A stretch of DNA of 63,910 nucleotides, the filler included, from Lenisia limosa (taxonomy: Eukaryota > Protista > Breviatea), in assembly GCA_001655205.1 (NCBI GenBank). It is 12 parts of 12 records of this genome, joined end to end, with 100 filler letters (N's around TTAATTAATTAA, not from the genome) between each part and the next. Parts side by side here need not be neighbours in the genome. Positions count along the whole stretch, not along the records: positions 1 to 19,642 come from LPNZ01001185.1; 11 more parts are not named here. The stretch is one strand, 5' to 3'. Each line of letters begins with the position of its first letter. The stretch's first letter is position 1. The position numbers and the translations under genes were made by a program. A model generated the notes under the pieces. That model saw nothing but the letters and a program-made list of their open reading frames with translations. It had not been told where the DNA came from and ran no database searches. Positions 1 to 19,686 of the stretch are shown in pieces.

Positions 1-1860
1 CCAGCGCCATATACCTTAAGTTCACCGGTGATATTCCAAGCTAAGGTTGTTAGCTTCAAGGAATCCAAGATCGCCTACCGCCACAAGCCCAAGGCCGTCC
101 AGCATATGACCTTAGTCGGTACCATCTGGTGAGAGGGGAGTATCAGTTTATGGAAAATTGTGATTTTTGCTTGTGACTTATAATCCGTGTTTTTCCTCTA
201 ATATATCTGCTCCAGCGGCGTACCGGACACAACGATTTCTTTACAACTAAAGGCAAATAAGAAGAGGTACCCAAAGGTGAAGCATTTTGACGTGAAGGAG
301 GGGACGTTTATTTTGCCAATAATTAAAAACAGAAACAAGGCATCAAAAATGGAGCTATCTAAAGGACTGACAAGAGACATTAAGAAAGCTTACCAAAGGA
401 AAAAGGAGGGAGGATCTTATCTTAACATGGGAGAACGGCCAACTTGAATGGGAAAAGATTTGATACAATCATGGCGCGGCACAGCAAACTGCTGAAGCTG
501 TCAAGAACGGGGCACTTCCGCCACGGTGCGACGACTGATATGATGAGGAGAAATTATTGGTTGTCATTGCATGTCAATATACCATTGAAACTTAACAGAC
601 CTGAAGGTTACAGGAAGATAAACCCTTAAAGGGAAGGGGGGAAGAAGGAAGGCTCCATATTGAGAGGGAATTGGTCCAGGATTGAAGTTATAAAGCAATG
701 AGGAAAAGGAGGGTAGGTAGGACGCGGCATCTGGTAATAGGGGTCAGTAATGAGCTGAGACGTTTTAGTCGGAGGGTGGAAGAAGGCTTAGAAGGCCAGC
801 CTTTCTTTCAATATAATATGGATGTTATTAGATGCAGCTTTTTGAGCATATCTCTTTTTTTTAATGTATACTTCTCGGTAGATTGAAAGAACGCATGACC
901 TGCAATTGCCTGGCACGTGGAGGCACGTCCAACTCCGTAAACATATTCAATAACACTCTTCTTGATGACCTTGGTTTCATAATAGTAAGCAAATAAGAGT
1001 ACAAAAAAAAGCAAAACGAAAATAAAAAGGGGAAAATTCCATCATTTTAATGATGGAATTTCTTACATTAGTCACATAGTTTAATTGAACTCTTTGAATC
1101 AAAAACATTCTTCATTAAGGTGGTGGTTCCATGTTGGGTATCTTATTAAATACGCTATACTTCCATTATTCATCCCAGAAATCGACAGTTGAGCCAGTTT
1201 AATGGTAAATATGCATGCCAAGAGTTTACCTGGTTGGGGTTGAAGAGCATAACGAAGATCCGCCAATGCTTGACGGGAGATGTTTAGAGTACAACACTGT
1301 CAAATAATAAGAGACTTAGAGGGGAGGAGAGAGGCTTGAGAAACCGTTGAGAAGAGAAGAGAAAAAACCACAAGTCACTTCTGAACACTCTCAGATTCTC
1401 TATTTTATGCTTCTGGCTCATCACTGGATTAAACTAGATAAGAGGAAATCTCGAGTTGTTCAGAGCTGGCGCCAACACGCCAATTCCTTTTGCTCAGAGA
1501 ATTCTCGATTTTGTTTCTCTTTTTCTAGTTTTGCATGATGATTAGTGAATACAGGCATATTTAAGAGTATAAAAGGTATTCAGGAAGTGATTAGTGTTGT
1601 CATTGTCCTTTTCCGTTGAGTAACTCGTGTCACCCCCTCAAGTGAGTGGTCAAATTATGTTCAATCCCCTACAAAAATAGACTGACACCTCCACCTTAAG
1701 CCACAATTTCAACAAAATGGACCCAAAAAAACACTTTATTTCATTCCAAAACCCCTTTGAACAAATAACCTGACTTAACCTTTTTGAAGAATAGAAAAGA
1801 AACCGTATAATAAGGCATAAATTCAGTAAAATACTTCATTTTTTCAAGATCGCCTTTGCT

Positions 1861-4800
1861 ATGGAAACTGGAACATCATACTGGCATCTTCTTGGCTCTG
1901 CTTCGACTTTTTTTGATAATATGTTTTATAATTTTGGGTCTTCACAACTGGTGGGATCAAGATATGACAACCATGACAGTGAGGGGTGGGATCAAGATAT
2001 GACAAGTTGGTTTTTTATTGGCAAAATAATGCAGTTATTTATTGTTAAAATAATCTTAACTCACATCAGAATTTTTACTTTACCCATCAAGGTTTCCTGT
2101 TGGGGTCTGTGAAATGCAAGGAAAACGAAATCATATGGAAGACGCACTTACAATAAAGGGCTCTTTTCTTGGAGATACAAAATCTGATTACTTCGCCATT
2201 TATGATGGACATGGTGGAACTGAAGTTGCAAAATTTTTATCAACTGCATTACATGCTCTTTTAGCAGATCGACTTCATGCTGGAAACACACCTGAGCTTG
2301 CATTAGAATCAGTTTGCTTTTGATACTTTTATTCCTTTTTTACGTTAATAAGTCATCCTAGCATGGTATTGAAAGACTACTATAGATGGATTGAAGGGGT
2401 TGAATTTTCTGAAATATTTGTTCACTTTGTGGGTATCAATTTTTTGAAAAACAATTAATTTCGGATGCAAAAAATAATAATACCTGACTCAGGGGGTTGT
2501 TCCTATTTGATATGAGAAGGTGGGGACCGAAAGCCTCAAGATTAGAGGTTCTGAGATATTCTTAATGCGGGAGTCCAATTAAATTTTTGCAATATAGTTT
2601 TTAAGATTTGGGGCCTGGGGTGGACAAATGTATAATTGTGAGTTTAATCGTTTCCGTGAGAATATTAGCTGAATTCCTTTATAAGGCACAGTAATGTCTC
2701 TGTTTTACACCACTTTGTGAAATCATCATCTAAATTAGAATATAGCACTTTCTATGGGTGATTTTAGACTTGAAAACTATACGATTTGACTAATATTTCA
2801 GGAAAAGTCAATACTAAAGTATTAAAGTTGTCCAATTCTCTTGGAGTTGACTCAGAAAAGTGCATATTTCTTCATTTAAAAATGTATTTAGGCGATGGAA
2901 GGGGGAAGAAGAAGCCTTAGGATGAGGAGGTAGGATTTTGGCTCAGAGAATTTGAGGTTTATGGTCTTCATACAAATTCTCAGACAAATTAGCGATATTC
3001 TTTGAGTGTAATGAAGATTATACTAATAATAGCGAAGAGAGGGTTCATAAAGGTTCAGGAAGCTCAAACTCACAAATATTTTTACTGGATGCAGTCTTTC
3101 TTAAGTTTTTTGGGCTTGGTAGATGTATAATTACTTGCCTAAGATGAAGTAAGCTCTTTGAATCAGATATTCTCTTGAAATTATCAACACATTGGGCGTC
3201 TGCTCTAAGCCAAAAACCTGTGCGCCCGCTACCCTTTCAGTCCCCACCTCCTCGGTTTGACATTTTGGGTTTCGCTTTTAGACCTTTTTAGGTTCTAAAC
3301 ATGATATTTGAGGAATTTAAATAATTAGTAACAACACACAACCAACACAACTGCCGCATTGTCTATTTGTTTCAGTTTTGGCCTAATGCCTCGGATAATC
3401 ACATTTCAGGTCATTTAAAACCATTTTTAGAATATTACATATCAGTGCTGTTTTCTACAAAAAAACTGCCTCATACATCAGAGGAAGCACTTATTTTTAT
3501 ACATTATATTGAGTATAGTGGACCTTTTTTTTATATAGATTGAAACCTGTTTGCAACCAGTCAATTTATATATACAAATTTAAAGGTTCATATAACTACT
3601 TAGAAGTTGTATTATATACATATATTATAACTAAGATTCTTCCTAAGTGCGTACTGAGATGATACAATGAAAGCGGGAGTATGGGTGATTTTAAATTTGA
3701 AAACTATACGACCAATATTTCAGGAAAAGTTAATACCAAGAAAACGACAAAATATTAATTTTCCAATTCTCTTCAAGTTGACTCAGACAAGTGCATATTT
3801 CTTGCAATGTTCCATGGAATTGCGGGCAAAATTCCAAAAAACATTGTTTTCGCAGTTTCAGCAGACTCCCGCTTCAAGTGCGTACTCTGATGTATAACGT
3901 ACTCCGATGTATTTCCCCAAAAAAACTACCCGCTGAATTAAGAGTCATTTTGATTACTTTCCACACTTTTTTTATTTTTGGCGAAATCGAAAAAGGACTG
4001 AACCACCTTAAATGGCAAATTTCTGATTAACTGTCCTTAATGGTGAAGATAGGTATTAATATTTCTTGTTGTTATCAACCCTTGTGTGTTGTTAGCTCAC
4101 AGAGTTGATTTGGGTTTTGTTTTTGTTTCATAAATTTTCCAATTTTACTCCCCACCCCCCCTCCCCTAGGATATGAGCGGAAATGGCTCCTTTAGTCGAA
4201 CAGAGCTGATTTCATCAAACTTATCGACGATAGGAGGGTAGGATTGTGGTTCTGAGTTGGTTTACTATCCAGAGCGATCCATCTCCGGGCAGTGCTGCCT
4301 TCCGCAACGCCGTGTCTGATCATCCCACTTGCCTTGTACCTCCCAGCTAACCATGGCCTTGTGTCCATCGTGTCTGTTCGAGCGTATGTGGCTGATGCTT
4401 ACTACATAACAAGTTCACCAGCATTAGCATCATCACATCATCAGAATCTTCATCATTTTATTAAATATTATAATATTTGACAATATGGTCGTTTTGAAAA
4501 TATATGACGCATTTCCTGAAAAATTAGACGGTTCCCAAAATCTGTGGGGCATATGGTGGAGTGGTTTTAAAAAAACAATACTATTTAAGGATGTTCAGAG
4601 GACGAAGAAGGCTTGATGACGAGGATTAGGTATGGGTGGACTCTAGCTTACAATGCAGCATTTGGTCGCTGATAGGTTTGTTTCGGTATCAGTTCTTAAG
4701 AGCCTAATGAAGACTAGGTTTCTTGGTATATTCTTGAACAGTGTTATCATGCAAATACAGTGTAATGAACACCAAACAAAATACACATCTCACCTTCCTC

Positions 4801-6417
4801 CTTAAAGCGTCCGTTAGAATGATGTCTGGAGCTTTAAAGAACCACATATCTCCGGTCCTTAATTAAGTCATTAAAGTGGGCCAAAAGCAAAGGTGCTTTT
4901 TTGGATTTTCCTCAATATTAGCAATTCTAATAATAAAAAAAAAAAACACAATTTTCAGAGGGTCCTATAGTTTCTCTCTCAAAAAGACCGCTGAGAAGGG
5001 AAAAGGGAGGGACATACTGGCTTCGTTATATTATTCTTGCTGAGCTGTTGACGGAGGGGAACGCAGCAGGGTGGAATAGCGAGATAATGTTTCTGTGATT
5101 GAAATATCACATTAACTTCAAGGTGACCTGGGGGGTCCGTGCTGACTATGGGCCAGTTGGATGCTTTCCCTCTTGGCTTCTTCTTGATACCTTCGTTGCT
5201 TAGATACATTTGTAATAAAAAGCGCTCTCTTCCTGAAAGGGGCGAGTTGTGTATCGTCTAGATCTTTGGAAAGTTGATGCCACAGCTGTGTTCTACTGGC
5301 TCTTCGCCTTCAGCTTGCTGTGTGCAGATTTTTCTCTTCTATCCAGTAGTTGATTCCATATTTCTTCTTCTTCTTCAAGCATGTTTCGTCAGTAATGAAG
5401 TCCCAATGGCCCTGCATGTAGATCTCATGTTTCAATTACCAAAATTCTCTAATCCACAGCTGTTAATTTCTGTTAAAATGTCGGGCTTTTTATCTCGAGC
5501 CTAGTTACGCTATTTTACAATACGATTCGACCATTTTAAGGGTTTTGGGGGTCTGGCTTTCTGTTTCTGAAGTCATTCGAAATTTTAAAGAGCCATCGTC
5601 CCAGGGAAAGAGAACTCAAAATCATGCGTCATCGCTCTACCTCTCGATTGATGAGAACTAGCTTTTGCTTTTCACACATCGTATCTTTAAATAAACACTA
5701 CCCGTCACCCAAGTAGCTGAATGTTGCTTTTATAAAAAGCCTAACTCTTTTAGGCGACTCTTCTCACATGTATGGTATTAAAAAATAAAAAAATGGGGTT
5801 TTCTTGCGGTTCAACAGCAGTTGAAATATTGTTTTTATTTGGCATCTCTTTTAATGATTGATGATAATATGTACTTTTCGAATACAGGGGATGCTCGCTC
5901 AGTAATATCAAGGCAAAAAAAGGCATTCAGGTATGTTTCAATCCAAAACTGTTATCATGACTTCCTCTTTTTCTTTTTTTAGATGCTCATATGATCATAA
6001 GCCAACAAATATTGAGGAAGAACAAAGAATAAAAGTTGTTTTTAAGTTCTTACCTTTGATGCTGGGCGGATTTGTCACCGAGGAAGGAAGAGTGAATGGT
6101 ATTCTTGCAGTTTCAAGGTCAATTGGGGACTTCATGCTTTCCCCTTATGTATGTCCTGAACCCTATATTAATACAATGGTGAAAACAAACGACGATGAAT
6201 TTGTTATAATTGCATGTGATGGTTTGTCTTTTTCTTAATTGAAAGGAGTTTGGGATGTCATGAGCGATCAACAAGCAGTCGATATTGTTCATTCTGTTGA
6301 TGATCCTGCATTAGTTTATTCTGTTATTGACACTTGGCTGCTTTAAAATTGAGGGATATTGCCTATTCATATGGTTCTATGGATAATATTACTGCAATGG
6401 TAATTAAGTTTAAATAG
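1861..6417 (+). CDS. Protein phosphatase 2C (PPM family), multi-exon; 5' end uncertain
   Basis: Spliced translation contains EMQGKRNHMED, FAIYDGHGG, CGSTA, NTGDAR, DHKP, RVNGILAVSRSIGD, IACDGVWDV and GSMDNIT, all diagnostic PP2C motifs in order. Stop TAG at 6415-6417. Introns 2312-5753 (approximate model), 5931-5982 and 6222-6245 are GT-AG; three others are GT-TG. Confidence 0.9.
4067..4169 (+). repeat. Acceptor-associated repeat (family B) copy
   Basis: TTGTTATCAACCCTTGTGTGTTGTTAGCTCACAGAGTTGATTTGGG...GTTTCATAAATTTTCCAATTTTACTCCC...CTAG; same consensus as the other copies. Confidence 0.8.
5450..5660. repeat. Partial copy of the ~1 kb foldback element
   Basis: ATCTCGAGCCTAGTTACGCTATTTT...AGGGTTTTGGGGGTCTGGCTTTCTGTTTCTGAAGTCATT matches 11430-11530. 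Confidence 0.75.
5820..5841 (+). other. Predicted 22-nt non-canonical GT...TG intron in PP2C
   Basis: GTTGAAATATTGTTTTTATTTG. Removal joins GSTA to ASLLMIDDNMYFSNTGD, with 13 residues between GSTA and N as in the PP2C consensus. Retention causes a frameshift and stop. Confidence 0.7.
6035..6058 (+). other. Predicted 24-nt GT...TG intron in PP2C
   Basis: GTTGTTTTTAAGTTCTTACCTTTG. Removal gives RI-KML-GGFV, matching the RI-xxx-GG consensus. Retention is in frame (8 extra residues), so this is the weakest of the three. Confidence 0.55.
6314..6336 (+). other. Predicted 23-nt GT...TG intron in PP2C
   Basis: GTTTATTCTGTTATTGACACTTG. Removal gives DP-AL-AA-LK-LRDIA. The downstream frame has TGA at 6328-6330 and there is no AG between it and the exon, so I found no GT-AG solution in frame. 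Confidence 0.75.
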
Positions 6418-7967
6418 ACTTGTTCAAGCTTTCGTTGGGTGGTATCTGTAAGCGTGTCTTTGGGGTTTATGGTATTCATACCTTGTTATTTTTGAAGTTT
6501 TTAGGCCTCATAGCGCGTTAGTACTCAATTTTGGTTAACAATTTCAATTTTTTTTATTATTATTATTTTCCTTATCTTTTCATTTATATTCTCGAAAGTG
6601 AAAGCCTTAGTAAGCAGTATGTAATTATATATAGTACATGTATGTATAATACATAGCAGCAAATTTTTTGCGCCGTTTTTGTTTTGTTCCACTATTTCGG
6701 GTTTCTTTTTAAAAAAAGGGGGAGCAAACAACTCCAAATACACTCAGAATGGTGCCCACATCGCTTTTAAATAATACTTAGTCAAACCTCAAATCTAAAC
6801 AATCATGTAATTTTGACTATAATGTTCCGATTTCCATCACCATGTGCGAAGTGGACTTCAGATTGGTACAAAGTACTGTTATTCATACACAATCCCATCT
6901 CAACAAGATTACTACCCAAAGCACACTTCCAAGGTTTCAGTTAGCCTGAGTTATGACTTATTTGGAATCCAATTTTAAAATCTTCCCCTGGTAAACCCAA
7001 TTGAACATCTTCGGCAACAAAGTGGCGGCACTCCTGTAAGGAAAACATGACCAATATTCCAACTTTCTGGACCAAACGAAAGCATGAAAAGCCGAATGGA
7101 ACACTTCCAGTGGATGGGCTACGCAAATTAATTGAATCGATGCCTGCTCAATGTACAGCCGTTATTAAAGCGGAGGGGGGTCCTGCTGGGTACTAATTGT
7201 TGTGTATATCTGGTAAATGCGCTGGTGGTTCCCAATATTCCACTTTTTGGTAATTGATGGTGTATAACTAAGAAAAAATCTCAAACATCAAAACACAGTT
7301 GACGAGTATATTTCTGAGAGGATTTGGAGTTTTTTGCTACATTTGTGAACAACACGACTTAGCTGCAAAAGTGTGGTTAACATCGCTTTTCGCGATATGC
7401 ACTTGTATTTAAGTGAAACTCCCTTTTTACAGAAAACCTTTAAACCCATTGTCAGCGCTACTCCCTCTGCCCACAATTGTCGCTAGTACGCGTAATACCA
7501 GTGCTTGGAAGCGTGCAGCTACCACCCCCAAGTCCATTGCCTTTCGTCTTCTGATGGTTAAGACTCCCCTTGACAAAAAGAAGCCGGAAGATGTCGATTC
7601 CGGCATTGATCTTTACGTACATCCCAATCCCTAAAAGATCAGGTTTTTTCTTAGGACATATTTACGAGTATTAGTGTGTTATAAACCCTCTTGATTCTTT
7701 CTGGCCATATGACATTTATAATGATGTAATCATAAAAGAGGTTATCCTGCTTCCAAGAGAAGTGGTACAATGATGAATGCGATTCATGAAGCTTGGGTAG
7801 AAGAAGGAAATAGTGATAATTAAAGGTAGAAATAGAGGGGGAGTAGTATAAAGTGAACTAGTTTTTGAGATCTCAGTGAAAATCTGGATCAAACTGTCCT
7901 GACGTGGTGACAAGCCTCTTGATTAATAAAGGTAAGTATTCTAAGACAATCTAACAGAAACGTGCAC

Positions 7968-8141
7968 TAAATCTGGAGCTTTGATCATCCTAAGGATCAC
8001 CAAGTTTTTTTTGCTTGAAGTCTATCGCCTGGGCTCTTTGATCTTAAAATGCTTATCAGGGATAAATAAATGAAACTTGGATCACAATATGAGCCCAACA
8101 ATTGGATGGGTCCTCTCTCTCTTCCTCTCTGCTTCTCTTCT
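7968..8141 (+). repeat. ~170-bp dispersed repeat, copy 1 (inverted copy at 15979-16146)
   Basis: TAAATCTGGAGCTTTGATCATCCTAAGGATCACCAAG...CTCTGCTTCTCTTCTA matches the reverse complement of 15979-16146. Confidence 0.8.
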
Positions 8142-8476
8142 AATGTTTAACAACAGCTTTNNNNNNNNNNNNNNNNNNNNNNNNNNNNNNNNNATGAATT
8201 GGACTCCCGCTTTAAGAACGCGTCGAGAAGGCAGCCGAGTTCGCTCCTTCTCTGCAGCAGCAGCAACCTCCTGCTCCCACCTCCTCGAGTAGCGACTTCG
8301 CCTTGGCCCTGATCAAGGGATTAAGGGTTCGCCTACATTGCTCACATCCTCGAACAACGACTTCACATTGACCCTCTTCAAGGTTAAAGATTCGCCTACA
8401 TTGTCAGATAAATACCAGGAGATGATGTTTCAAGCATTGTACCCGATGCAAATCAATATTGCCGAAATAATTTTAC

Positions 8477-8778
8477 CTTTCAGAACAACTCTGAGCTCTG
8501 TGAGGTCTTTGGGGAACTGTAGTCCTTGGACACCTCATCCTCCAGGCCCCTCATGACATTTTCTTTCAACACAATTACACCATTTTTATTGATGCCTTCT
8601 TTGCATCTTTGAAGGAAGCCGATAAAGTCCTGTACAGTAAACACAGATTTAACAAACCTCATCATGAAGGTAAATGGCTACCCACTGAACCCAAATGCAA
8701 TCGTACACGCTCTCTTCAGGGGTATAATCTTGTAGGCCACTGCAATAAATCCCCAGAATGCGACTTGCAGGCAATGAC
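8477..8778 (-). pseudogene. NTMT1/Tae1-like N-terminal protein methyltransferase, C-terminal exons; frameshifted or mis-assembled
   Basis: YCSGLQDYTPEESVYDCIWVQWVAIYLHDE|DFIGFLQRCKEGINKNGVIVLKEN matches the NTMT1 family (GLQdFtP..YD.IW.QW..hL.D.d...FL..C...L...G.iv.KEN). There is a 28-nt GT-AG intron at 8630-8657 and a 1-nt frameshift after DYS. Confidence 0.7.
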
Positions 8779-8832
8779 CTAGAGTGAGTTAAAAAGGCAA
8801 TATCACAGATTATATTCATTAAAAAAAAATTC

Positions 8833-8948
8833 CCACTTAATTTTGCGTTCTCTTACTTCGCCCTTCTTTCCACTTAATTTTGCGTTCTCTTACTTCGCCC
8901 TTCTTTCCACTTATTTTTGCGTTCTCTTACTTCGCCCTACTTTCCACT
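8833..8948. repeat. Tandem repeat, ~37-bp unit x3
   Basis: CCACTTAATTTTGCGTTCTCTTACTTCGCCCTTCTTT repeated. Confidence 0.85.
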
Positions 8949-9169
8949 TCGTACTGATACGAGAAAGGAAGACAGAAAAAGTTATGGGCCTTCGTGGTTT
9001 ATATATCATATCATATGTAATACTGAAAAGAGTAAGAACCCCCCCCCCCCNNNNNNNNNNNNNNNNNNNNNNNNNNNNNNNNNNNNNNNNNNNNNNNNNN
9101 NNNNNNNNNNNNNNNNNNNNNNNNNNNNNNNNNNNNNNNNNNNNNNNNNCACTATAAATAAGAGCTTCC

Positions 9170-10140
9170 TAAGGAAAGTATGTTTCTCAGATGATTAATG
9201 TGGATTACCATTAAATTTTTCAAGAAATGCTGAACCAAACTCATCCACACAGGACTATTAACGACATCGTCCCCGAAATTGAGTCTCTCCACATCCAGCA
9301 GGTTCTCTCTACTATCTTTCGTGCCATCGGTCAGGCCCGGTGACGCCAACATCTCTGCCATCGGTGCACTTATCGAGGAAGGCTTTGCCTCCCAGGCCGA
9401 TCGACGCCGCACTCCCTTTACAGCAACCACGCCTCACACCCACATCCCGCAGCACTTGCCACTCAAACCCCATCGGGTTGATCACAAAAATAAAAGAAGA
9501 CGGGTCGATTAAGAACCACATCATTCTAGATGGGAGCTAACAGTTCGAAGCTTCATTGATAAAATAAGGAGCAGCCTCAATAAAGGTTGGTGACTGTTCG
9601 GAGGCGATCTTTCAGACACTTTCTATCTCATAACCATTGCATACAATGAGAAGCATATTTGCCATTTCAAGAAAATGCCTATGGGTTTTAGGAATTCATC
9701 AGCTCAGTTTAACCTCCTATCCCAAGCAATTAAGACCATCTGGCACCATAGAATAATGTCAGGATGGCTCTTCAACCAGCAGGACTACGACAGCAATATC
9801 AAGAAACTCTCTGATTTAGAAGAAGCAGTAATCAAACAATTGGTTAAAAACCATCACAACTTGTTGTTCATCTACATGTACCTAGACGACGCTGCAGCCA
9901 CAATCACCATTGCACGTTACTGCCTGTTAACACTAATCTGCATCTTCAACAACTACACGATTCAATACGCACCAAAAAAGCTGCATCTCCCAGTCACACG
10001 CTCTACTCACATGGTATCACCCTAGCTAGATACCATGAAAATGACCGCCAAATCTTTCCTCCGTACTATAAATGACACCCTCACTAAGGGAACAGCAACA
10101 AGGAAGGAAGGACAATCCATCATTGAAAGTTAGTTTGGGC
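9170..10140 (+). mobile_element. Decayed reverse transcriptase, DIRS/Ngaro (tyrosine-recombinase retroelement)-like
   Basis: Across stops and frameshifts: PIGLITKIKEDGSIKNHIILD, GDLSDTFYLITI, KKMPMGFRNSSAQFN, YMYLDD, then LDTMKMTA. This is RT motif order; the LDT..M.A tail resembles DIRS-class RTs. Confidence 0.75.
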
Positions 10141-10889
10141 AGGTACTTTACTACAGACCTTTTACCTCTTGAGTCCAGGCCACCCAACGCTACCACGAAC
10201 CTCAGCAAAGAGTCTATAGAGGGTCGATGTATGGGTATTTATCAATCTAGACCCCAACTGGGCTGGAATGGTAATGATCCACAATCCAAAGAAGATAAGA
10301 CCAAGAAGTAGCACATTTCACTATGTGAAGCAAAATCGATAGATTTTGAAAGCTGTTCAAAAACCTGATAAAGTATGTTGATGACTCTGACCTTATTAAT
10401 ACTCTATTACGTTACTTTCTGGTTAAAAAATGACTTGCTGTTCGCCTAAATTCCTGATCTTCTGAATGATCTCCTTTCCTCTTCTGGTTGCTCCCTACTC
10501 CCGCTCTGCCTGTGTTATGATCATTTAGAGCATTTGAAGAACTTTACCAATGCATCCAAGAAGTTTTTGCACCTCGCTGCTTCATTTATTGATCTGGTCC
10601 TGATCCCTGAACCGATCTTCATCCCCTGGTCCTCTGTTTCTCTTGCTGCGCATTTTGAGGCTCTCTGATGATTTCTTCCTTTTTTAATTCCATTCCCCTA
10701 TGCCAACTATTCTCCTTTCCTTTTTTGGTGACCTGTAAATATATTTTCTTTCTAAAGTGACCCAAATGGGAAAGATACAATCACAAGGAAGTCATCATAT
10801 TTTCCTGTGGATTGTCTCATTTTTTTTATCATATTCATTAGTGATTTAATGGGAAATGGCCAAAAATCACCAGATCAGATGATATGTAT

Positions 10890-11910
10890 ATATCATATGC
10901 TTCCGAAACTAAACCCGATTTTTTATAACTTTTGAAACAGTTGCCCTCTTACAACGTGAATGAACATCATCAAAAACCATTGGAAATATGAAATAATAAC
11001 CAAATGTATAATTTTACACAAACTCCAGGACATTTAGCACTCTGGGCCGGGCGCCCGGGAAAATTTTTTTCAAAAATTAGGACTAAATCTTACTACTGTT
11101 GTCATTTTGCGATGTTCTTATATTTGGAATTAAGTTTGAGGAAGTTTCATAACTTCTGCGATATTATTTTGATCTGGGACCTTGTTTAATTGGGAAAACA
11201 GGGTTAAACAAGTCGAAAAAACGGTCGTTTCTCATCAAATAGCGCTGTAAAACTTCGAATGACTTTAAAAACAGAAAGACAGACCCCCAAAACCCTCAAA
11301 ATGGTCGAATCGGATTTTGAAATAGCGTAAGTAGGCTCAAGATAATAAGCCTGACATTGTCACTGAAATTAGCAACTGTGGAACACTCGAGACTTTTGGT
11401 AATGTCAATCAAAAAGACAGGATTTATATCTCGAGCCTACTAACGCTATTTTAAAATCCGATTTGACCATTTTCAGGGTTTTGGGGGTCTGTCTTTCTGT
11501 TTCTGACGTCATTAGAAGTTTTAAAGGGCTGTACGATGAGAAATGACCGTTTTTTCGACTTTTTCAGCCCTGTTTTCCCAATTAGGCAAGTATCAAACTT
11601 TCTGGAACATTTAGGTCCCAAATCAAATCAAAAAAATATCGCAAAAATTATGCGACTTCCGCAAACTTAATTCCAAATCTAAGAACATCGCAAAATGACA
11701 ACAGTAGCAAGATTTAGTCCTGTTTTGAAGAAAATATGCCCGGGCGCCCGGCCCGGAGTGCCAAATTTCCTGGAATTTGTGTGAAATTTTACATTTGGTT
11801 ATTATTTCATATTTCCAATGGTTTTTAATGATGTTCACGTTGTAAGAGAGCAACTGTTCAAAAAGTTAAAATCGGGTAAAATCGGGTTTAGTGTCGGAAA
11901 CATATATGCA
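10890..11910. mobile_element. ~1 kb palindromic foldback element
   Basis: The left arm (AAACCCGATTTTTATAACTTTTGAAACAGTTG...GGCCGGGCGCCCGGG...) is the reverse complement of the right arm almost to the centre (~11390). Partial copies lie at 5450-5660 and 12023-12150. Confidence 0.85.
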
Positions 11911-12429
11911 TGAACGGCTAAACCCTATAAAACCCTATAAATCCCGATATTTTTATAAACTTTNNNNNNNNNNNNNNNNNNNNNNNNNNNNNNNNNNNNN
12001 NNNNNNNNNNNNNNNNNNNNNNAATTTGGAATTAAGTTTGTGGAAGTTTCATAACTTTTGCGATTGGTCGAATAAGATTTTAAAATGGCTTTAGTAGGCT
12101 CCAGATATGAAGCCTGACATTTTGACTGAAATTACCAAACTTCCTCGCAGCAGTCCAAGTACTACTTGATGTCGGACTTGTATCTGTTTTCACCGAAGTC
12201 TTGCTTACGGCGGATTCCAGAAGGTCCTTTTTGACACGCTTGAGGCGCCTTCTCAACGTAACTAAGGTATGAGATTTCACTAGAGTGGTACATGTCTATT
12301 ATCCGCTGCCCTTTTATGATAATGAAATGAGTATTGGGAAAAAGCATGACACTTGAGATGGACTTAAATTAATATAAATACATCGTAAGAGACTGACATT
12401 GATAGTGAGACGAAAGGGGGGGGGGGCAT

Positions 12430-13510
12430 AATTATTTGAGCCGTGTTGGGCTGGGGTGATTGCGGGTTTGGCCCTCGGGGTCAGTGATGCCTTCTCGGCT
12501 GAGAATTAGCGAGGGCTTTGGATGCCGAAAGGATGTACGCTAAGTGTAGCGTGGAGGCTATCTTTAGGAGGCAGTAGAGGTCTCTGATCCATTCATCAAT
12601 AACAAGCTTGTCCTTGACGCCAAATCTAGCATCGCCGCGGTTCCACCTGACAATCAATTAAAAGTATAATGTTATCACGGAGAGGGAAATGCCTTTTTTG
12701 AAAGCCGCATTGAAGTTGAAGAGGTATGCATCAATCTTTTATTGGGGGAGGCTTGCGTTCATTGATATAGTGTCAAGGAGAACACCAAGACAATGGATGT
12801 CCTTGTGGGGGCGACAACCTTACACCGATGCTGAACTCTCTCCAGGTGATGAGAAGAGTGGCGAGTATGTACTTGGCCATGAGTTCGGTCTTTGCGGCAC
12901 TGAAAACATTGGCGAAGTAAATGAAGATGACGCAATCGTGAGACCAAGACTGGAGGTTGGATTGGAGTGCTTGCCGTTAGTGTTGAGAAATGCCGTGATG
13001 CTTGAGATCGTAGTCACCATTTAGGATGTGACCGTTCATGATACGGAGCTTGACTATCACACAATTTGAATATCACACAATTTGACATGAACGTTTATAT
13101 AACAACGACATTTCAATGACACATACGTACACGATAATTCAACATACTGTATATTGATATGAGAAAAATATAATACCGACATACTTCTTTTTGTTGGAAG
13201 AGATGGGCGCCAGAACCGGGGAGGCCGCGAAGAAGGGCTGGCCTCGAGAGAGTAGTCAACGGAGGGTGCGGTATCGATCTTGTTAGCTGCTTGTGAAACG
13301 AAACCTTCCTTGATGAGGCAGAGATGTTGGCGTCACCGAGGGTGGGGGCCTGGTTGAGGGCGCGAAAGATTGTCGACAAGACCTGTTGGATATGGAGGGA
13401 CTCGAAGAATGTCGTTGATAGTCCTGTGTGGATGAGTTTGGTTTACCCGGTTTCTTGAAAAAAATTAAGGATCATCCACACTAATCATCTGAGAAACATA
13501 TCTTCCTTAA
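12430..13510 (-). mobile_element. Second decayed copy of the same RT element, internally deleted
   Basis: 13110-13510 is the reverse complement of a diverged 9170-9480. It then reads RIMNGHILNGDYD...VIFIYFANVFSAAKTELMAKYILATLL...KVVAPTR...LDTISMNASLP, homologous to copy 1, with YLDD decayed to YFAN. Confidence 0.7.
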
Positions 13511-15978
13511 AAGGAAAGTTCTTGTTTTTATTTAAATAAACAGATTGATTAACTTATCAGCCTTATTCATGCCTTTTAATCAAATATGTGGTATCTTATA
13601 GTAACATACCTCAGGATAAGAAAGAACACGTCAATCAAGAACACGTTTGACCTTGGCCACCCGGAGTTCCCTTGTCTTGTGGTAAGGATGTAATTATATC
13701 ATTTTCTATGACATCGTGTTATCAGTTTACAATGTACCTTGTGTTAAATGCTACCTATAACACTTTTGAAACCTAATATTGTTTTAGATGGTACCAAAAG
13801 ACTGTGATCCGAATGTGAAAGTACAGCCGCTTGACTGGGATAGCCTTCAGGAGGCATCAGCTGTGGGGGGCATCTGAATGTTTGTTACCGCTTTATTTTT
13901 GGTAACAACTATTGGTGCACAATTTGGGGGATGAAATTTGTGTTGCATTGTAGCTATTGCAGCTCGCCAGGCTCTGCGAATCAGCACGAACCTTGATGAC
14001 CCCCATCTCTAACGTCGACTTCACGACTACAAAGTCCTTGCCATTAGCTATGAGGTATGTAACCATGTGACTTTTGTAGTATTTGACATTAAATGAAACA
14101 TCATACTTGTTCCAGGACCGTACAGAATTCGAGAATTGTATAGAATTCCTTCTAAAAATGCGTTCTCCTGGAGGACAGTATACTGGATATATCAATCTAA
14201 CCTAGTCATGTTTCTGTTTTTGTTTTCGGGGGTGTTGTTTGTCTAGAGGCTCAAATATATATGTGTGTTTTTATGATATTTAGTAGTTTCCCTTTGTATT
14301 CCGAAGACTTACTTAAAGAAAGTTTCATGCGTGTCTTTACTACTCTGTAACAGAAACTGACTCATCGATAAGAAAATTTGTACATTAGAAACGTTTTTAG
14401 ATACAACAATGAAAACAACGACCAGGAAGTAAAACACAAATTTAGTCATACACAGACGGCGGGAAAAAGTAACCACGGTCTCTGACAAGTCCTTAGCTAC
14501 AATATCAGAATCTGAAAATGGACCTGTAAAAATAATAACCCAGCGAACATATCAATGACACAGTGGTAATTGAAAGTTGAAAGGATAGAAATTTTAAATG
14601 AAAAGCTTGAATAACTGTCATCTGTTGTTAGGCTTTCCATGACAAGTATAAACAACATACCTTATCAGCCATAAGTTTACTGGGAGTAAGAGTAAATAAA
14701 ATACTGTGCAAATGTACATTCATCAGCACATCAGACCATCAGACAACACAAGTCAGCAATGTTCTAGAACATTCTTGATTAGTCTTGATTACTTTCCCCC
14801 TTTTTGATGCATTTTCTTTCAGTAGCAGATACCCCCCCTGGTTTCAATCATTGATATTGGGGGGGTTTACCAGAATATTATTCTTGGCATAAGAAAAATG
14901 GCACCAACCCTTGGTGTGGCACCGCACGCCCGCACGCATTAGCCCAATAAAAAAAAACCGCAACAAAAGAAAGACAAAAAAGTACTTGCACAACAGCACA
15001 ACCATGTTGTATTGTATTTAAAAATAGTATAATAATAATATAATGTATCATATCGATATATATATATCTGATTTTTTATGTATTGCGAACATATCCTCTG
15101 AATATCAATCATATTTTTCTAGTCGTATATATATCATATTTTTTTATTTAGTATTACAAAATAATGATGTCAAAGCTCTGGACATCATTCTAAATTCACC
15201 TGATACATCAAAACTCCCGAACAGTTTGAGTTTTCTATAAAATCACTTTAATAAACCATATTTTCCCACTATTTTTCTATAATAATTTCAATTTCAATCA
15301 CGTGATCGAACACCAATTTAAATATTATCGACTCAAACTCAAATTACGTTTAGGCACTTAGGTTGACACAACAGCCCAAAACCGTTATCAAACGCAACAT
15401 TCAAGGAATAAATGGCAATTATTCTGGAAATTTGACCTTGTAGAAAGTGCTATTTTGAGCATTTCTCTCTCAAAATTCACTATTACACAGCCAAAGCAGG
15501 GGAATTTCTAACCAATTGATACAGGCAAACAAGGGGGGAGTAATGTCAAAAATAAGCAAAAGTTGACCAAACCTCTTGATTTGTCTAAGGTAAAAATTAA
15601 AGGTTTACTTTCTGTTCCAATTCCGGTTTTTACGTAGAACCGGAACGATGTGGCAACTACTTATTAGAGCTTCACTTTCAGTCTAAAAAATTCGATATAT
15701 TTCCAATAAATATCGACAAATATCGATAATTCACACGTCTTTTAGAGCCAAAAGTGAAGCTCTACTTAATAACATATATACTTCCTTTTACTTTCCCATT
15801 TATATTACAGGTAGTATGAAATATATATCGATATAATAGACATAGGTTGGTGTATATAATCGCAAACATGAATAAAAACCGCCAACAAGCCAAAAATCGA
15901 CATAAATCGCTTTAAAAACACCATTTTTAGTGTTAAATTCGGCATTTTTGAGCACAAGACTATCAATATAACATCAAA

Positions 15979-16146
15979 TAGAAGAGAAGCAGAGAGGAAG
16001 AGAGAGAGGACTTATCCAACTGTTGGGCTCATATTGTGATCCAAGCTTCATTTCTATTGAGCATTTTAAGATCAAAGAGCCCAGGTTAAGGACTTCAGGA
16101 AAAAAAAACTTGGTGATCCCAAGGATGATCAAAGCTCCGGATTTAA
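15979..16146 (-). repeat. ~170-bp dispersed repeat, copy 2
   Basis: Reverse complement of 7968-8141. Confidence 0.8.
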
Positions 16147-17006
16147 TGTTAAACAAAAATGCGCACCCCTCGAAGTAAGTGTGGGGAAGCATTGATTGGT
16201 ATGACATTTAATGCCGGCCGTAGTAATTGGTCATCTTTCCATGTAGTTAAGTGGACTGCTGGTGGAAATTGCAGTTACCAGTCTTGCGGATCTTGTCGAA
16301 AAACTCTGCCTTGTACAGGTTGTATTGTTTAGCAATTACCCTTTAAGAAATACAATTTACAGACCACGATATTAAGCCGGCTTCTGTCCCCATATGTGCT
16401 CGTTGTGGTAAGGTATGTGGCTGGTTGTTAATAGTTATCATTTTGTGGAATTTCATTTTCCTCTTCTTTGTACATTGTTTTTAATATGCACACAATCTGC
16501 CTGATCGTATGTACATCTTAGATACCAATAGTCACTTTGACCAGGATAAGGAGGCCTGTCCAATATCAGTGCGATGCTATTCTTCAAGCGGATTGGCAAT
16601 TTACATCAAGTATTTCTTGGCAACCTAACAAACTAGTATATGATTATTACTGCTGTGGTACTCTATGTCCTATCTCAATGGATGAGTGGGGGCCATTCGG
16701 CCAGAAAGAATGACGGCGATGTGTATTGGATTCTTCGATAGAGAGATCGGAGACGGATGTGTAACGTCCATTGAGAAGGTCTGGGCGCGACACAGCAAGG
16801 ACCTTTGTTCCATGTCAAAGGTCTCGTTCCAAGTAAGTGGCTTAATCTTTAATGAGAGTAAACTGTGTTTCTTTGAAACTGCCACTCCCTGCATACTTCT
16901 TTGTTTGGAATGTTCCGTTTGTTTGTTATATTTGATCTCTGATGTTGGGAATTTTTCCTATCCTCCTCCACCCACCCTGATAGAAGAAGAAAGGTGAGGT
17001 TATGAT

Positions 17007-17440
17007 ATGAAACATGATCAGAAAGAGATCGAGAAAACTCCCACCACAGTTTTGCCTCCCCTTTCTCTTGCTGATCCTATTACTAAGAAGTCGCCTCCTT
17101 CGGTTGTGAGGGGTCGCTCAGCCGGAAATATCGCCGTCGGGTCTTCCGTTGGGAAAGATCTCCGCGCCCAGAACCTCAACTTCCGTCAACGACTTCACCT
17201 TACCGCTCTTCCTCCCAAGTATGATGGAGAATTTTGTTTTTGAAGTGTTTTTTAACATGTTACCATTTTTTTTAATTGTTATCACCTTGAAGGACAAAAG
17301 ACACCCTTCTGCTTGTCTCTCCGGTATTCTTGTCAAGACCGCTGCTCTTGGCAACATTTGCAAGCCCGCTGATGAGACCACATCCGAGAGCATAATGCAT
17401 CATATTATCAAGACTGGATACTACCCACTGCTACCAAGGT
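17007..17440 (+). CDS. Exon-like ORFs of an unknown protein
   Basis: Coding-like stretches (TTVLPPLSLADPITKKSPP...; LVKTAALGNICKPADE...) end at GTATG donors. No family recognised. Confidence 0.3.
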
Positions 17441-17631
17441 ATGTTCAAGCATATTAGCAGTGTGGTGGGGGTGTGTGGTACTGTGAAAGCTATTCTCTTG
17501 TTTTGTTTTGCTAAACTTATGTGAAAATGTAAGTTTTTTAAACAATTCTGCATTTACCCCCCAGATCCCCACCTCACCGGCACTCACAAGAAGAACGGCA
17601 AGAGGTTGACTCTTTGCCGGCTCCACAAGTG

Positions 17632-19022
17632 TCACCAGAAGGAGCAGTCTCTTCTTCTCCCCGTCTCAGTCCGTGTCGAGGGATTCAATGATGAAAAGTC
17701 ACTTATACTAAAGTTATGTCCCCACTTCCGCATTCCTCTGGTGTCGTGCTCCATTTTCTCCTCCAGAATGGCTGCACCAACAGCCTCAATAGCCTCAGCG
17801 CTGTGGAGGTGGAAGACATCGCCTCCAAATGCGGAGACAATGCCACCAGACACAAAAAAGCGTCAGCCTAGGCGCCTAAACTCCATCATATTAAGACTTG
17901 TCTTTACAATTTTCATTATATCAACAAAAACAAAACAAAAAAAATGTTGAGGGTTGGCACAACTGGGTGGTGCACCCCCAGAAAAATGAAAATATTATTC
18001 CCTGCTTTTCTGCCATGCAACATATTATTGAACCTTGTCATTGTTAATAATGTGCACATAAGTACGCTATATATTTTTTTTTGTGGCTTTTCAATGTACA
18101 GTACCACCTAAACGTCACTTTCTAGACAATTTTTTTCTTGACTTTCCCGATCAATTGTCGCAATTTTATGAACCGTATCGGATTGGGGAGCATTTTGATT
18201 TCACTCACTTGTTCATCAATGCATTTTACTCAAGAAGTTATTGATTTTGAAAGACTTGTATCACTTGAATTTATGTTTAAAAGACTACACTTTTCCTTAG
18301 TCACAACCAACACGGACAAGTGTGATAAGGACGTTGACAAAGCATTCCGGGTAAAAATTCTTTGTTATTTTTTTCAATTGTCAATTTCTCTGTCATTTAT
18401 GGTATTCCTTACACCACAGTAGATGTACCTTCTTTCCGACAATTCCAAAAAACTCAACAGTTAGGCAGCGGCAGACCATGAAGCGTTTCTCAGCAGGTGT
18501 CCAGACATGGTTGAAGTACATCAGATCCCTCGCGGTTCTGGTACAAATCCTGAACAGACACGGAGGTCTTTTCCATGTTAAATACCGTCAAAAGAGAGCT
18601 AACTTAAACATATTCATCAATGTACTATAGAAGGAGTTGAAAAGTTCGCTTGCGACACAAGCAGAGAACTCCAATTGAACAGGAGGAAGTTAAAACCTGA
18701 TTTCCCATTTCCAAACAAACAGCGTAAGAACAAGGATTATGTGTATCTTTCCTGAAGAAGCTGCAAGACGCTCACTAAGATATTCACGCATCTAGAAACT
18801 AAAATAGAGCAGTGTGTAGAAACTACAAGCCGTACCAGTTTCGGAGTCAATGTTGACAACCAGGAGGCCATATTCGCCAATAGTCCTCCAAACATCCTCA
18901 TTGTCAGGGCTGTAGAGGGCAGTGAAGGAATCATAGCAGACATCTTCTTGGAGGAGAGGGTTCTTCTTCATGATAAACTCCCTCATTGATAGTTTTCTTC
19001 CACTAAAATTCACTGTTTTCAT
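17632..19022 (-). CDS. Possible gene or pseudogene of unknown function
   Basis: Several protein-like segments (MREFIMKKNPLLQEDVCYDS...; GGDVFHLHSAEAIEAVGAAILEEKMEHD) with intervening stops. No family recognised. Confidence 0.25.
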
Positions 19023-19686
19023 TTTAAACTGTTGAAAATACTAAAAAAAAAAAAAAAAACTATTTTATGCTCTGGTCCTGTCTTCTCTCCCAAGAGGAGT
19101 ATTTTTCTGGCCCCTTTCCGCTAAAAATAATTCAAAATTGATATTATTTTTGTAAACAAAAGCAAGTTAGTCCTGTTAAAATCCAAGGCTTGTGCTTTCT
19201 TCCCCAGTTTCGTAACCACCTTAAGAGTTGTCAATCGCCTAACCGTATCCAAACAACACTAACAACTTGTATGAAGCTTTTCGCACCATAAGCAAGCCGA
19301 AAGATGCACAATTTGAAAAATCGTTCTTCTCTGATCTTGCCACATCCCCCCTTCTCCCCTTCTCAGCGGTCTTTGAGAAAGAGTAAAAATGAGAAGCTTG
19401 AGAAAAATTGTTAAATTGCAAATATCGAGAAAAATCCCAAAAATGTCTTTTCACTTTAACCCCGCATTAAGTCAATTACTTTTTAAAAAAAGGCGGGGAG
19501 GGGGGGTAGTAATATTACATTTCCTAAACTACTTGCACAATAAATGACATCTTCCACAGGCTACCATCAATCCATGAACAGCATTTATGCAAATTAGAAA
19601 AAAAGGGGGAAACCAAACAACGCAACTGAAAACCCCCCTTTCNNNNNNNNNNNNNNNNNNNNNNNNNNNNNNNNNNNNNNNNNNNN

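Follow-up and report, generated by a model that had tools for sequence, protein, structure and literature searches.

We analyzed a 63,910-nucleotide stretch of DNA from the breviate Lenisia limosa (assembly GCA_001655205.1), hereafter called the window, whose positions 1–19,642 come from LPNZ01001185.1. This part carries, on the plus strand, an intact and transcribed gene for a PP2C protein phosphatase, and three short segments of this gene, at positions 5820–5841, 6035–6058, and 6314–6336, are missing from its polyA RNA. These segments are very probably ultra-short spliceosomal introns with a GT donor (GTTG or GTTT) and a TG acceptor (YTTG|R). Few signals in nuclear pre-mRNA splicing are as constant as the 3′ terminal AG, and the exceptions known to us are confined to rare alternative sites, the minor spliceosome, and a few lineages whose introns are derived from mobile elements or defined by structure. 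Here, the reading frame and the active site of a single conserved enzyme depend on three TG acceptors in its gene, and an abundant mRNA shows that all of them are used.

RNA and DNA Evidence for Removal of the Three Segments

A preliminary description, made from the sequence alone, had proposed that the three segments are tiny introns with TG acceptors, and had named sequencing errors as an improbable alternative. To examine these claims we used two public sequencing runs of one study: X1, which behaves like DNA and contains all sampled words of the locus, and X2, which is polyA "metatranscriptomic" RNA-seq. Contigs of both runs were placed on positions 3000–8100 at 80% likeness. At 90% likeness no RNA contig was placed, probably because gaps of 22–24 nucleotides (nt) lower the likeness; the RNA contig was recovered at 80%. 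The RNA evidence takes the form of an assembled (Logan) contig from one RNA library and concerns one gene.

This polyA RNA contig (2724 nt, word depth 130.5) matches 5754–5928 and 5981–6355 with no mismatches over approximately 457 nt. It omits 22 nt at 5820, 24 nt at 6035, 24 nt at 6221, and 23 nt at 6314, and thereby leaves out the three TG segments base for base, using the junctions that had been predicted. In addition, it jumps from 5928 to 5981; the 52 nt skipped have GT..AG ends when the cut is shifted by two bases, and correspond to an intron at 5931–5982. The TG segments thus leave the same transcript as two canonical GT..AG introns, one of which (6222–6245) has the same 24-nt size and a GTT donor, in agreement with the earlier statement that a GT-AG intron of similar size lies nearby.

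At the three TG-segment omissions the RNA depth was 130.5/130.5, whereas in DNA the shortened form had a depth of 0 and the full form a depth of 41.4. No shortened form of any of the five excised segments was found among the contigs of the DNA run. Conversely, no rival RNA contig retaining the segments had been assembled, although contigs lose rare variants. The lack of an assembled retained isoform may reflect constitutive use of the TG acceptors in this gene. The RNA depth was 0 across 4710–5735, a region within a long upstream intron of the same gene, save for a trace of 0.37 at 4881–5051, indicating that the contig represents processed mRNA rather than DNA carry-over. Moreover, X2 holds 35% of the sampled 31-mers of the gene (5793–6480), whereas unspliced RNA would be expected to hold nearly all of them. 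The value of 35% fits a spliced transcript with the contig ending at 6355, for which we estimate that about 37% of the words are wholly exonic up to 6355.

The DNA evidence is equally uniform. The depth of the segments (41) is similar to that of their flanks (38–44), which is the single-copy level. An independent metaSPAdes contig from the European Nucleotide Archive (ENA) (NODE_4028, coverage 36.9) shows 100% identity with the window at 4354–8160 and 8194–8599, the three segments included. At the acceptor positions 5840, 6057, and 6335, which had been singled out for checking, the DNA contigs contained no alternative base at a share of at least 10%, and the four variable positions detected are all elsewhere. 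Because two DNA assemblies agree at approximately 37–41×, sequencing or assembly error at the three acceptors is excluded, and the early judgment that three A-to-T errors are unlikely was well founded.

The Spliced Product Is an Intact PP2C Phosphatase

The spliced product contains a full PP2C (PPM-type) catalytic domain of about 250 residues. Membership in the PP2C family is supported by a match to PF00481 (E = 6.9e-21 for the exon pair within 5984–6220) and by PDB matches to PPM1A, PPM1B, and HAB1. All PP2C motifs are intact (MED, DGHGG, GSTA, GDxR, DHKP, RVNG.LAVSR..GD, ACDGVWD, and GSxDN), including those with the metal-binding Asp residues (MED, DGHGG, ACDG, and DN). The best matches are proteins of various protists that combine leucine-rich repeats (LRR) with PP2C (E ~1e-71 to 1e-47, 38–47% identity over ~250 residues). 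The nearest named homologs are from Archamoebae, dictyostelids, the jakobid Stygiella, Diphylleia, and Anaeramoeba, all of which have the LRR + PP2C architecture. Proteins such as those of Pelomyxa schiedti (KAH3732712.1), Acytostelium (XP_012755745.1), and Anaeramoeba (KAJ5077449.1) share the PP2C domain and all motifs with the product described here; they differ by their LRR part, which was not found in the 2 kb upstream in the window.

Multiple alignment with ten homologs using MAFFT revealed gap-free columns at all three junctions, GSTA|ASLLMI, QRIK|MLGGFV, and DPAL|AALKLRD, as anticipated from the spacing of the PP2C motifs. Retention of the 22- or 23-nt segment would cause a frameshift into stop codons. 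Retention of the 24-nt segment would leave the frame open with no stop, and would add eight residues (VVFKFLPL) to a conserved loop; 78 query residues (2–79, insert included) are covered by only about 68–74 residues in most homologs among the matches listed. An enzyme that looks active requires the removal of all three TG introns. The 250 codons include neither TAA nor TAG in frame, and Gln is encoded five times, always by CAA or CAG; as far as visible, the gene appears to use the standard code.

Sequence Features of the Three Introns

The first intron (5820–5841, 22 nt, GTTGAAATATTGTTTTTATTTG) starts with GTTGAA and ends with TTTG, the second (6035–6058, 24 nt, GTTGTTTTTAAGTTCTTACCTTTG) starts with GTTGTT and ends with TTTG, and the third (6314–6336, 23 nt, GTTTATTCTGTTATTGACACTTG) starts with GTTTAT and ends with CTTG. 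All three are in phase 0, begin with GTT, and end with TTG, exactly as first described. By base-composition arithmetic, the chance of such ends is approximately 3e-4 per segment and about 1e-10 or less for the three together.

Considering the flanking bases, the second segment has a single possible register, GT..TG, and the first and third have only one other, shifted one base rightward, with TT..GG ends. The three segments have the 5′ GT of a U2-type intron, and no permitted register of any of them gives the 3′ AG. Direct repeats at the true boundaries amount to 0–1 nt. No AG is present within 16 nt past the TG acceptors, and the next ones, 17–46 nt into conserved coding sequence, are unused; their use would remove conserved residues. 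We also looked for signs of U12-type introns, and all three segments lack both the 5′ /RTATCCTT and the TCCTTAAC branch motif.

The gene has four introns of 22, 23, 24, and 24 nt, which is a small sample (n = 4) that falls within the narrow size range of ultra-short introns (≤30 nt). TG acceptors account for three of these four and for three of the five short introns below 60 nt. The TG introns are T-rich, and their GTT donor is shared with the 24-nt GT..AG intron and with a 3442-nt intron of the same gene (GTTTGC). Inspection of the sequences revealed that all four tiny introns have an A, a candidate branch point, at intron position 17–18 in a YTNAY context (TTTAT, CTTAC, and TTGAC in the TG introns, CTTAAT in the canonical one), and that the splice junction follows this A by 4–7 nt.

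Alternative Explanations

Several points weigh against assigning the three segments to spliceosomal splicing. Involvement of the spliceosome is deduced from sequence features, and the 3′ AG, which is a defining feature of U2-type introns, is absent from all three segments. The evidence comes from one gene, one RNA library, and contigs, so that minor retained isoforms would escape detection. The library type of X1 is unrecorded, although the run behaves as genomic, with introns, repeats, and intergenic sequence all at ~40×. Finally, the related genes described below have only GT-AG introns of 35–105 nt at other positions and thus give no comparative support for an ancient origin. Four other explanations were considered, and all of them appear improbable to different degrees.

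The one which survives best, although we consider it very unlikely, is excision without the spliceosome, either by an endonuclease and a ligase, as in XBP1/HAC1 processing by IRE1 or tRNA-type splicing at a bulge-helix-bulge, or in the manner of the nonconventional introns of euglenids. The missing 3′ AG would fit such a process, and the size of 22–24 nt resembles that of the 26-nt XBP1 intron. However, the segments and their flanks fold no better than shuffled sequences (z = −0.09, +0.41, and +1.89), the CNG|CNG loop motifs are absent at the cut sites, and all three segments start with GT. Furthermore, length, T-richness, donor type, and the A at position 17–18 are common to these segments and the adjacent canonical 24-nt intron.

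Programmed DNA elimination, similar to the removal of internal eliminated sequences (IESs) in ciliates or to chromatin diminution in dicyemids and nematodes, is a slightly poorer candidate and has very little chance of being correct. According to this explanation, the RNA would be derived from a shortened somatic copy and the assembly would represent the germline. The segments are short, AT-rich, and about as long as the smallest IESs; in two of them TTG occurs near both ends, and the genome is repeat-rich. On the other hand, the segments occur at the depth of their flanks with no trace of the shortened form, and the independent ENA assembly carries them too. They lack TA ends, and boundary repeats of 0–1 nt mean that there are no pointers. 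The same RNA also loses canonical GT..AG introns that match the segments in size and donor type, and there is no hint of the code with TAA/TAG as Gln that many ciliates use.

An artefact, whether template switching by reverse transcriptase (RT), misassembly of the RNA contig, or an error in the DNA assembly, is hardly credible. It is true that non-canonical "introns" in RNA-seq data are often RT products formed between short direct repeats, and that the RNA evidence is a Logan contig rather than raw reads. Nevertheless, junction homology of 0–1 nt is too short for RT template switching or for a jump in a k = 31 graph, the contig has a depth of 130 with no competing retained contig, and the two DNA assemblies are identical. 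Three separate events would each have had to restore the frame and the spacing of the homologs exactly, with GTT..TTG ends in common. Equally hard to credit is an AG at all three acceptors of the allele or copy that is expressed, with the assembled DNA being a silent allele or paralog with T: the acceptor base of the transcribed copy is not seen directly because the introns are absent from RNA, but the RNA fits this single-copy locus without a mismatch, no other letters occur at the three acceptor positions among the DNA contigs at a share of at least 10%, and three coincident A/T differences would be needed, at acceptors only.

A Possible Mechanism of 3′ Splice Site Choice

In published spliceosome structures, the terminal guanines at the 5′ and 3′ ends of the intron are paired with each other, and the base at position −2 is paired with the branch adenosine. 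If the three segments are spliceosomal introns, their 3′ end may be set, in introns this short, by the distance from the 5′ splice site and the branch point rather than by scanning for AG. The terminal G, which is conserved, would still pair with the 5′ G when the second catalytic step takes place, and position −2 might tolerate U besides A; for a U, too, pairing with the branch adenosine would be conceivable.

We tentatively consider it possible, just short of favoring it, that these introns belong to a genome-wide class of 22–24-nt introns whose 3′ end is determined by a constant distance from donor and branch point and not by an AG, with U freely accepted at position −2. If such a class exists, it would imply a change in second-step recognition of the 3′ splice site, involving U2AF35, Slu7/Prp18/Prp22, Prp8, or the base triple of 5′ splice site, branch, and 3′ splice site. 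Should TG acceptors be general in this organism, they would provide a natural system for the study of 3′ splice site choice near the physical minimum of intron length, and they would point to a simple, testable ruler model. Gene prediction limited to GT-AG introns would then systematically frameshift or truncate genes in this genome and possibly in other tiny-intron genomes. Tiny-intron genomes have been annotated with standard gene predictors, and these usually take canonical ends for granted. The same warning would cover the animals and protists in which ultra-short introns were recognized recently, and whose published intron statistics rest on GT-AG-only annotations.

Comparison with Related Genes and Other Lineages

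To place the TG introns in context, we compared the gene with its homologs in related organisms. The homologous gene of Pelomyxa schiedti has 11 introns of 40–105 nt; every one of them is GT-AG, and most of the donors begin with GTA or GTG. In a metagenomic relative (L003/L004; 34% GC; 65% identity over its 52-aa open reading frame [ORF] fragment P0070), the introns are GT-AG and 35–40 nt long (L003, an ENA metagenome contig, 3790–4560), the first with a GTTGGG donor and the other four with GTA. Another environmental LRR-PP2C gene (L006) has introns of ~53–64 nt, as estimated from tblastn gaps. The LRR-PP2C genes of both L003 and L006 are split into many small overlapping ORFs by prokaryote-style gene calling. 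Some introns of the relatives lie 2–7 nt or a few codons away from the TG introns, and none in P. schiedti or L003 is exactly at the three TG positions. The intron positions in the relatives speak neither for nor against the TG introns being ancient, and they give no sign that these introns go back to ancestral AG introns located there. Neither the tiny size nor the TG ends are shared by P. schiedti or the metagenomic relative.

The donors in this gene (GTTTGT, GTTTGC, GTTGxx, and GTTTAT) resemble those of Entamoeba, and Archamoebae are among the nearest PP2C homologs. In Entamoeba, the 5′ splice signal is GUUUGU, and introns are longer and end with AG. Splice signals of this type are also covered in a preprint (bioRxiv 10.1101/2022.06.08.495308).

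Ultra-short introns have been described in Paramecium and Nyctotherus (~25 nt), Stentor (15–16 nt), and mikrocytids (16–17 nt) (PMC10245619), as well as in myxobolid myxozoans (median 22–27 nt) and Dicyema japonicum (PMC13644364; PMC4986447; PMC6543705). Like the introns reported here, those of ultra-short-intron lineages have a narrow size range, are T-rich, have a weak 5′ consensus past GT, and carry a putative branch A near the 3′ end. In Thelohanellus kitauei, most introns are 20–25 bp and the mean is 240 bp (PMC4986447), and a similar mix of tiny and long introns is found in the present gene. However, myxobolids and Dicyema have a 3′ AG where splice sites have been described (PMC13644364), whereas three of the four tiny introns here have TG. 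The donor also differs, being "GTa" in myxozoans and Dicyema (PMC13644364) and having T at position +3 here. Overall, myxobolid myxozoans and dicyemids are similar to our case in intron size and repeat content and not in the spectrum of PP2C homologs (PMC13644364; PMC4986447; PMC6736024; PMC6543705).

In human U2-type introns, TG has been verified as an alternative 3′ splice site in 36 genes (Szafranski et al. 2007, PMC2374985). These sites resemble ours in that GT..TG occurs in U2-looking introns that retain the terminal G and differ at position −2 alone; in human, however, TG is an alternative (PMC2374985), whereas here it is the sole acceptor in the assembled mRNA. In the full-text literature, with subscription journals outside its coverage, TG acceptors were found only as such human alternatives (PMC2374985) and no constitutive GT-TG ultra-short introns were found, though a prior description is possible.

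Fritillaria, Oikopleura, Amoebophrya, and euglenids, too, efficiently remove introns that depart from the GT-AG rule. Fritillaria and Oikopleura have many non-canonical introns. Across these four groups, such introns deviate from the rule at the donor, contain terminal or direct repeats of mobile elements, or depend on secondary structure. By contrast, the introns reported here have a GT donor and lack repeats and structure, and only position −2 of the acceptor deviates. Many non-canonical introns have likewise been reported for Amoebophrya (PMC7789003) and, as nonconventional introns, for euglenids (PMC11170887).

Exon–Intron Organization of the PP2C Gene

The preliminary description had assumed an otherwise intact PP2C gene. 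Its intactness was substantiated, and the gene proved larger than described. It does not start at the ATG at 5793: the exon containing 5793 begins at 5754, and the N-terminal half of the PP2C domain is encoded 3.4 kb upstream, in an exon ending at 2311. All exons and introns given here are on the plus strand.

This upstream exon (2070–2311, encoding ..RFPVGVCEMQGKRNHMEDA..YDGHGGTEVAKF..PELALES) is supported by its translation, by matches to PP2C structures in PDB, and by 81 tblastn matches of homologs in 2000–2200. Its end was set by 30 unplaced letters that the RNA contig has upstream of 5754 and that match 2282–2311 with 0 mismatches; none of the other loose ends of RNA contigs maps within the window. 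Its start at 2070 is inferred only, from an AG at 2068–2069 and the last in-frame stop at 2057–2059. A 21-nt sequence, GGTGGGATCAAGATATGACAA, occurs twice just upstream (1950–1970 and 1985–2005, 35 nt apart), and a putative 64-nt intron (2006–2069, GTTGGT..CTTAACTCACATCAG) would directly follow the second copy. Removal of this candidate intron would join an ORF from an ATG at 1861 in frame to the PP2C exon.

The RNA contig joins 2311 to 5754, which defines a long intron of 3442 nt (2312–5753, GTTTGC..CCTAACTCTTTTAG). This intron splits the PP2C domain, is filled with dispersed repeats, and contains another transcribed piece. A second RNA contig, 526 nt long and of low depth, matches 4170–4236 and 4272–4372 with 0 mismatches, and the rest of it maps outside the window; it implies a canonical 35-nt GT..AG intron at 4238–4272 on the plus strand, within the long PP2C intron.

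Downstream of the long intron, the RNA match begins at 5754 right after ttttAG, with an exon (5754–5819, ATLLTCMVLKNKKMGFSCGSTA) that is also supported by the reading frame. After the first TG intron follows an exon at 5842–5930 (ASLLMIDDNMYFSNTGDARSVISRQKKAF..), which covers PF00481 positions 107–132 and is present in the RNA contig. The RNA contig also supports the next intron, a canonical one of 52 nt in phase 2 (5931–5982, GTATGT..TTTTTTTAG) that ends with TTTAG. The exon 5983–6034 (..CSYDHKPTNIEEEQRIK) precedes the second TG intron and is supported by frame, Pfam, and the RNA contig, and the exon 6059–6221 (MLGGFVTEEGRVNGILAVSRSIGDF..FVIIACD-G) follows it, with support from PF00481 and the RNA contig. 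The canonical 24-nt intron (6222–6245, GTTTGTCTTTTTCTTAATTGAAAG, GTTTGT..GAAAG) is in phase 1, and the omission placed at 6221 in the RNA is the same event after left normalization. The exon 6246–6313 (G-VWDVMSDQQAVDIVHSVDDPAL; frame, Pfam, and RNA contig) is separated by the third TG intron from the last coding exon (6337–6417, AALKLRDIAYSYGSMDNITAMVIKFK), which ends with a TAG stop and is supported by the RNA contig up to 6355 and, for the remainder, by the frame and homology to the PP2C C-terminus. When all five short introns are removed, an open frame of 480 nt extends from the ATG at 5793 to the TAG at 6415–6417. Introns of 22–64 nt, the putative one of 64 nt included, occur in this gene alongside one of 3.4 kb.

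The RNA contig reaches 2265 nt upstream of 5754, and further exons may lie beyond the start of the scaffold. No LRR exons were detected in 1–2100 by tblastn with the LRR parts of homologs, and no LRR or other conserved exon was detectable in 1–2069 on the plus strand. The upstream RNA stretch could possibly represent a long 5′ untranslated region, a merged neighboring transcript, or exons past the scaffold start.

Repeats and Other Elements in the Window

The window is gene-poor and repeat-rich. Pfam analysis of 20 longer ORFs outside the PP2C gene gave nothing significant, no second conserved spliced gene was found there, and Rfam and tRNA scans of the window gave no match. The repeats include a possible DIRS-like element, hairpin elements, and a 95-nt repeat of very high copy number.

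At the ~95-nt element at 4066–4160 (..TTGATTTGGGTTTTGTTTTTGTTTCATAAATTTTCCAATTTTACTCCCCACCCCCCCTCCCC..), DNA contig depths add up to approximately 130,000 (bins 4026–4196), compared with ~40 for single-copy sequence, and its edges coincide with the ends of hundreds of contigs. This dispersed repeat of very high copy number is similar to a short interspersed element or a miniature inverted-repeat transposable element (MITE).

Inverted terminal repeats at 9170–9267 and 13409–13509 (86–97% complementary) enclose ~4.2 kb. An RT-like ORF inside (9594–10022, MPMGFRN..YLDD) matches RVT_1 with an E-value of only 0.035, and a protein search with this ORF matched only two unnamed proteins. The whole element (9170–13509) may represent a retroelement of the DIRS-like kind, and another contig (L007) of the same ENA assembly has a copy of it with 69% identity.

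A near-perfect hairpin at 11181–11590, with 195-nt arms that are 85% complementary and a 20-nt spacer, is surrounded by nested inverted repeats (10923–11871, also the region 10961–11837). The hairpin and its nested repeats look like foldback or MITE-type elements, and one arm family occurs again at 5453–5596, just upstream of the PP2C exons. Finally, a tandem repeat at 8830–8949 consists of three copies of a 37-nt unit with 93–100% identity and adjoins an assembly gap (N run, 9051–9149).

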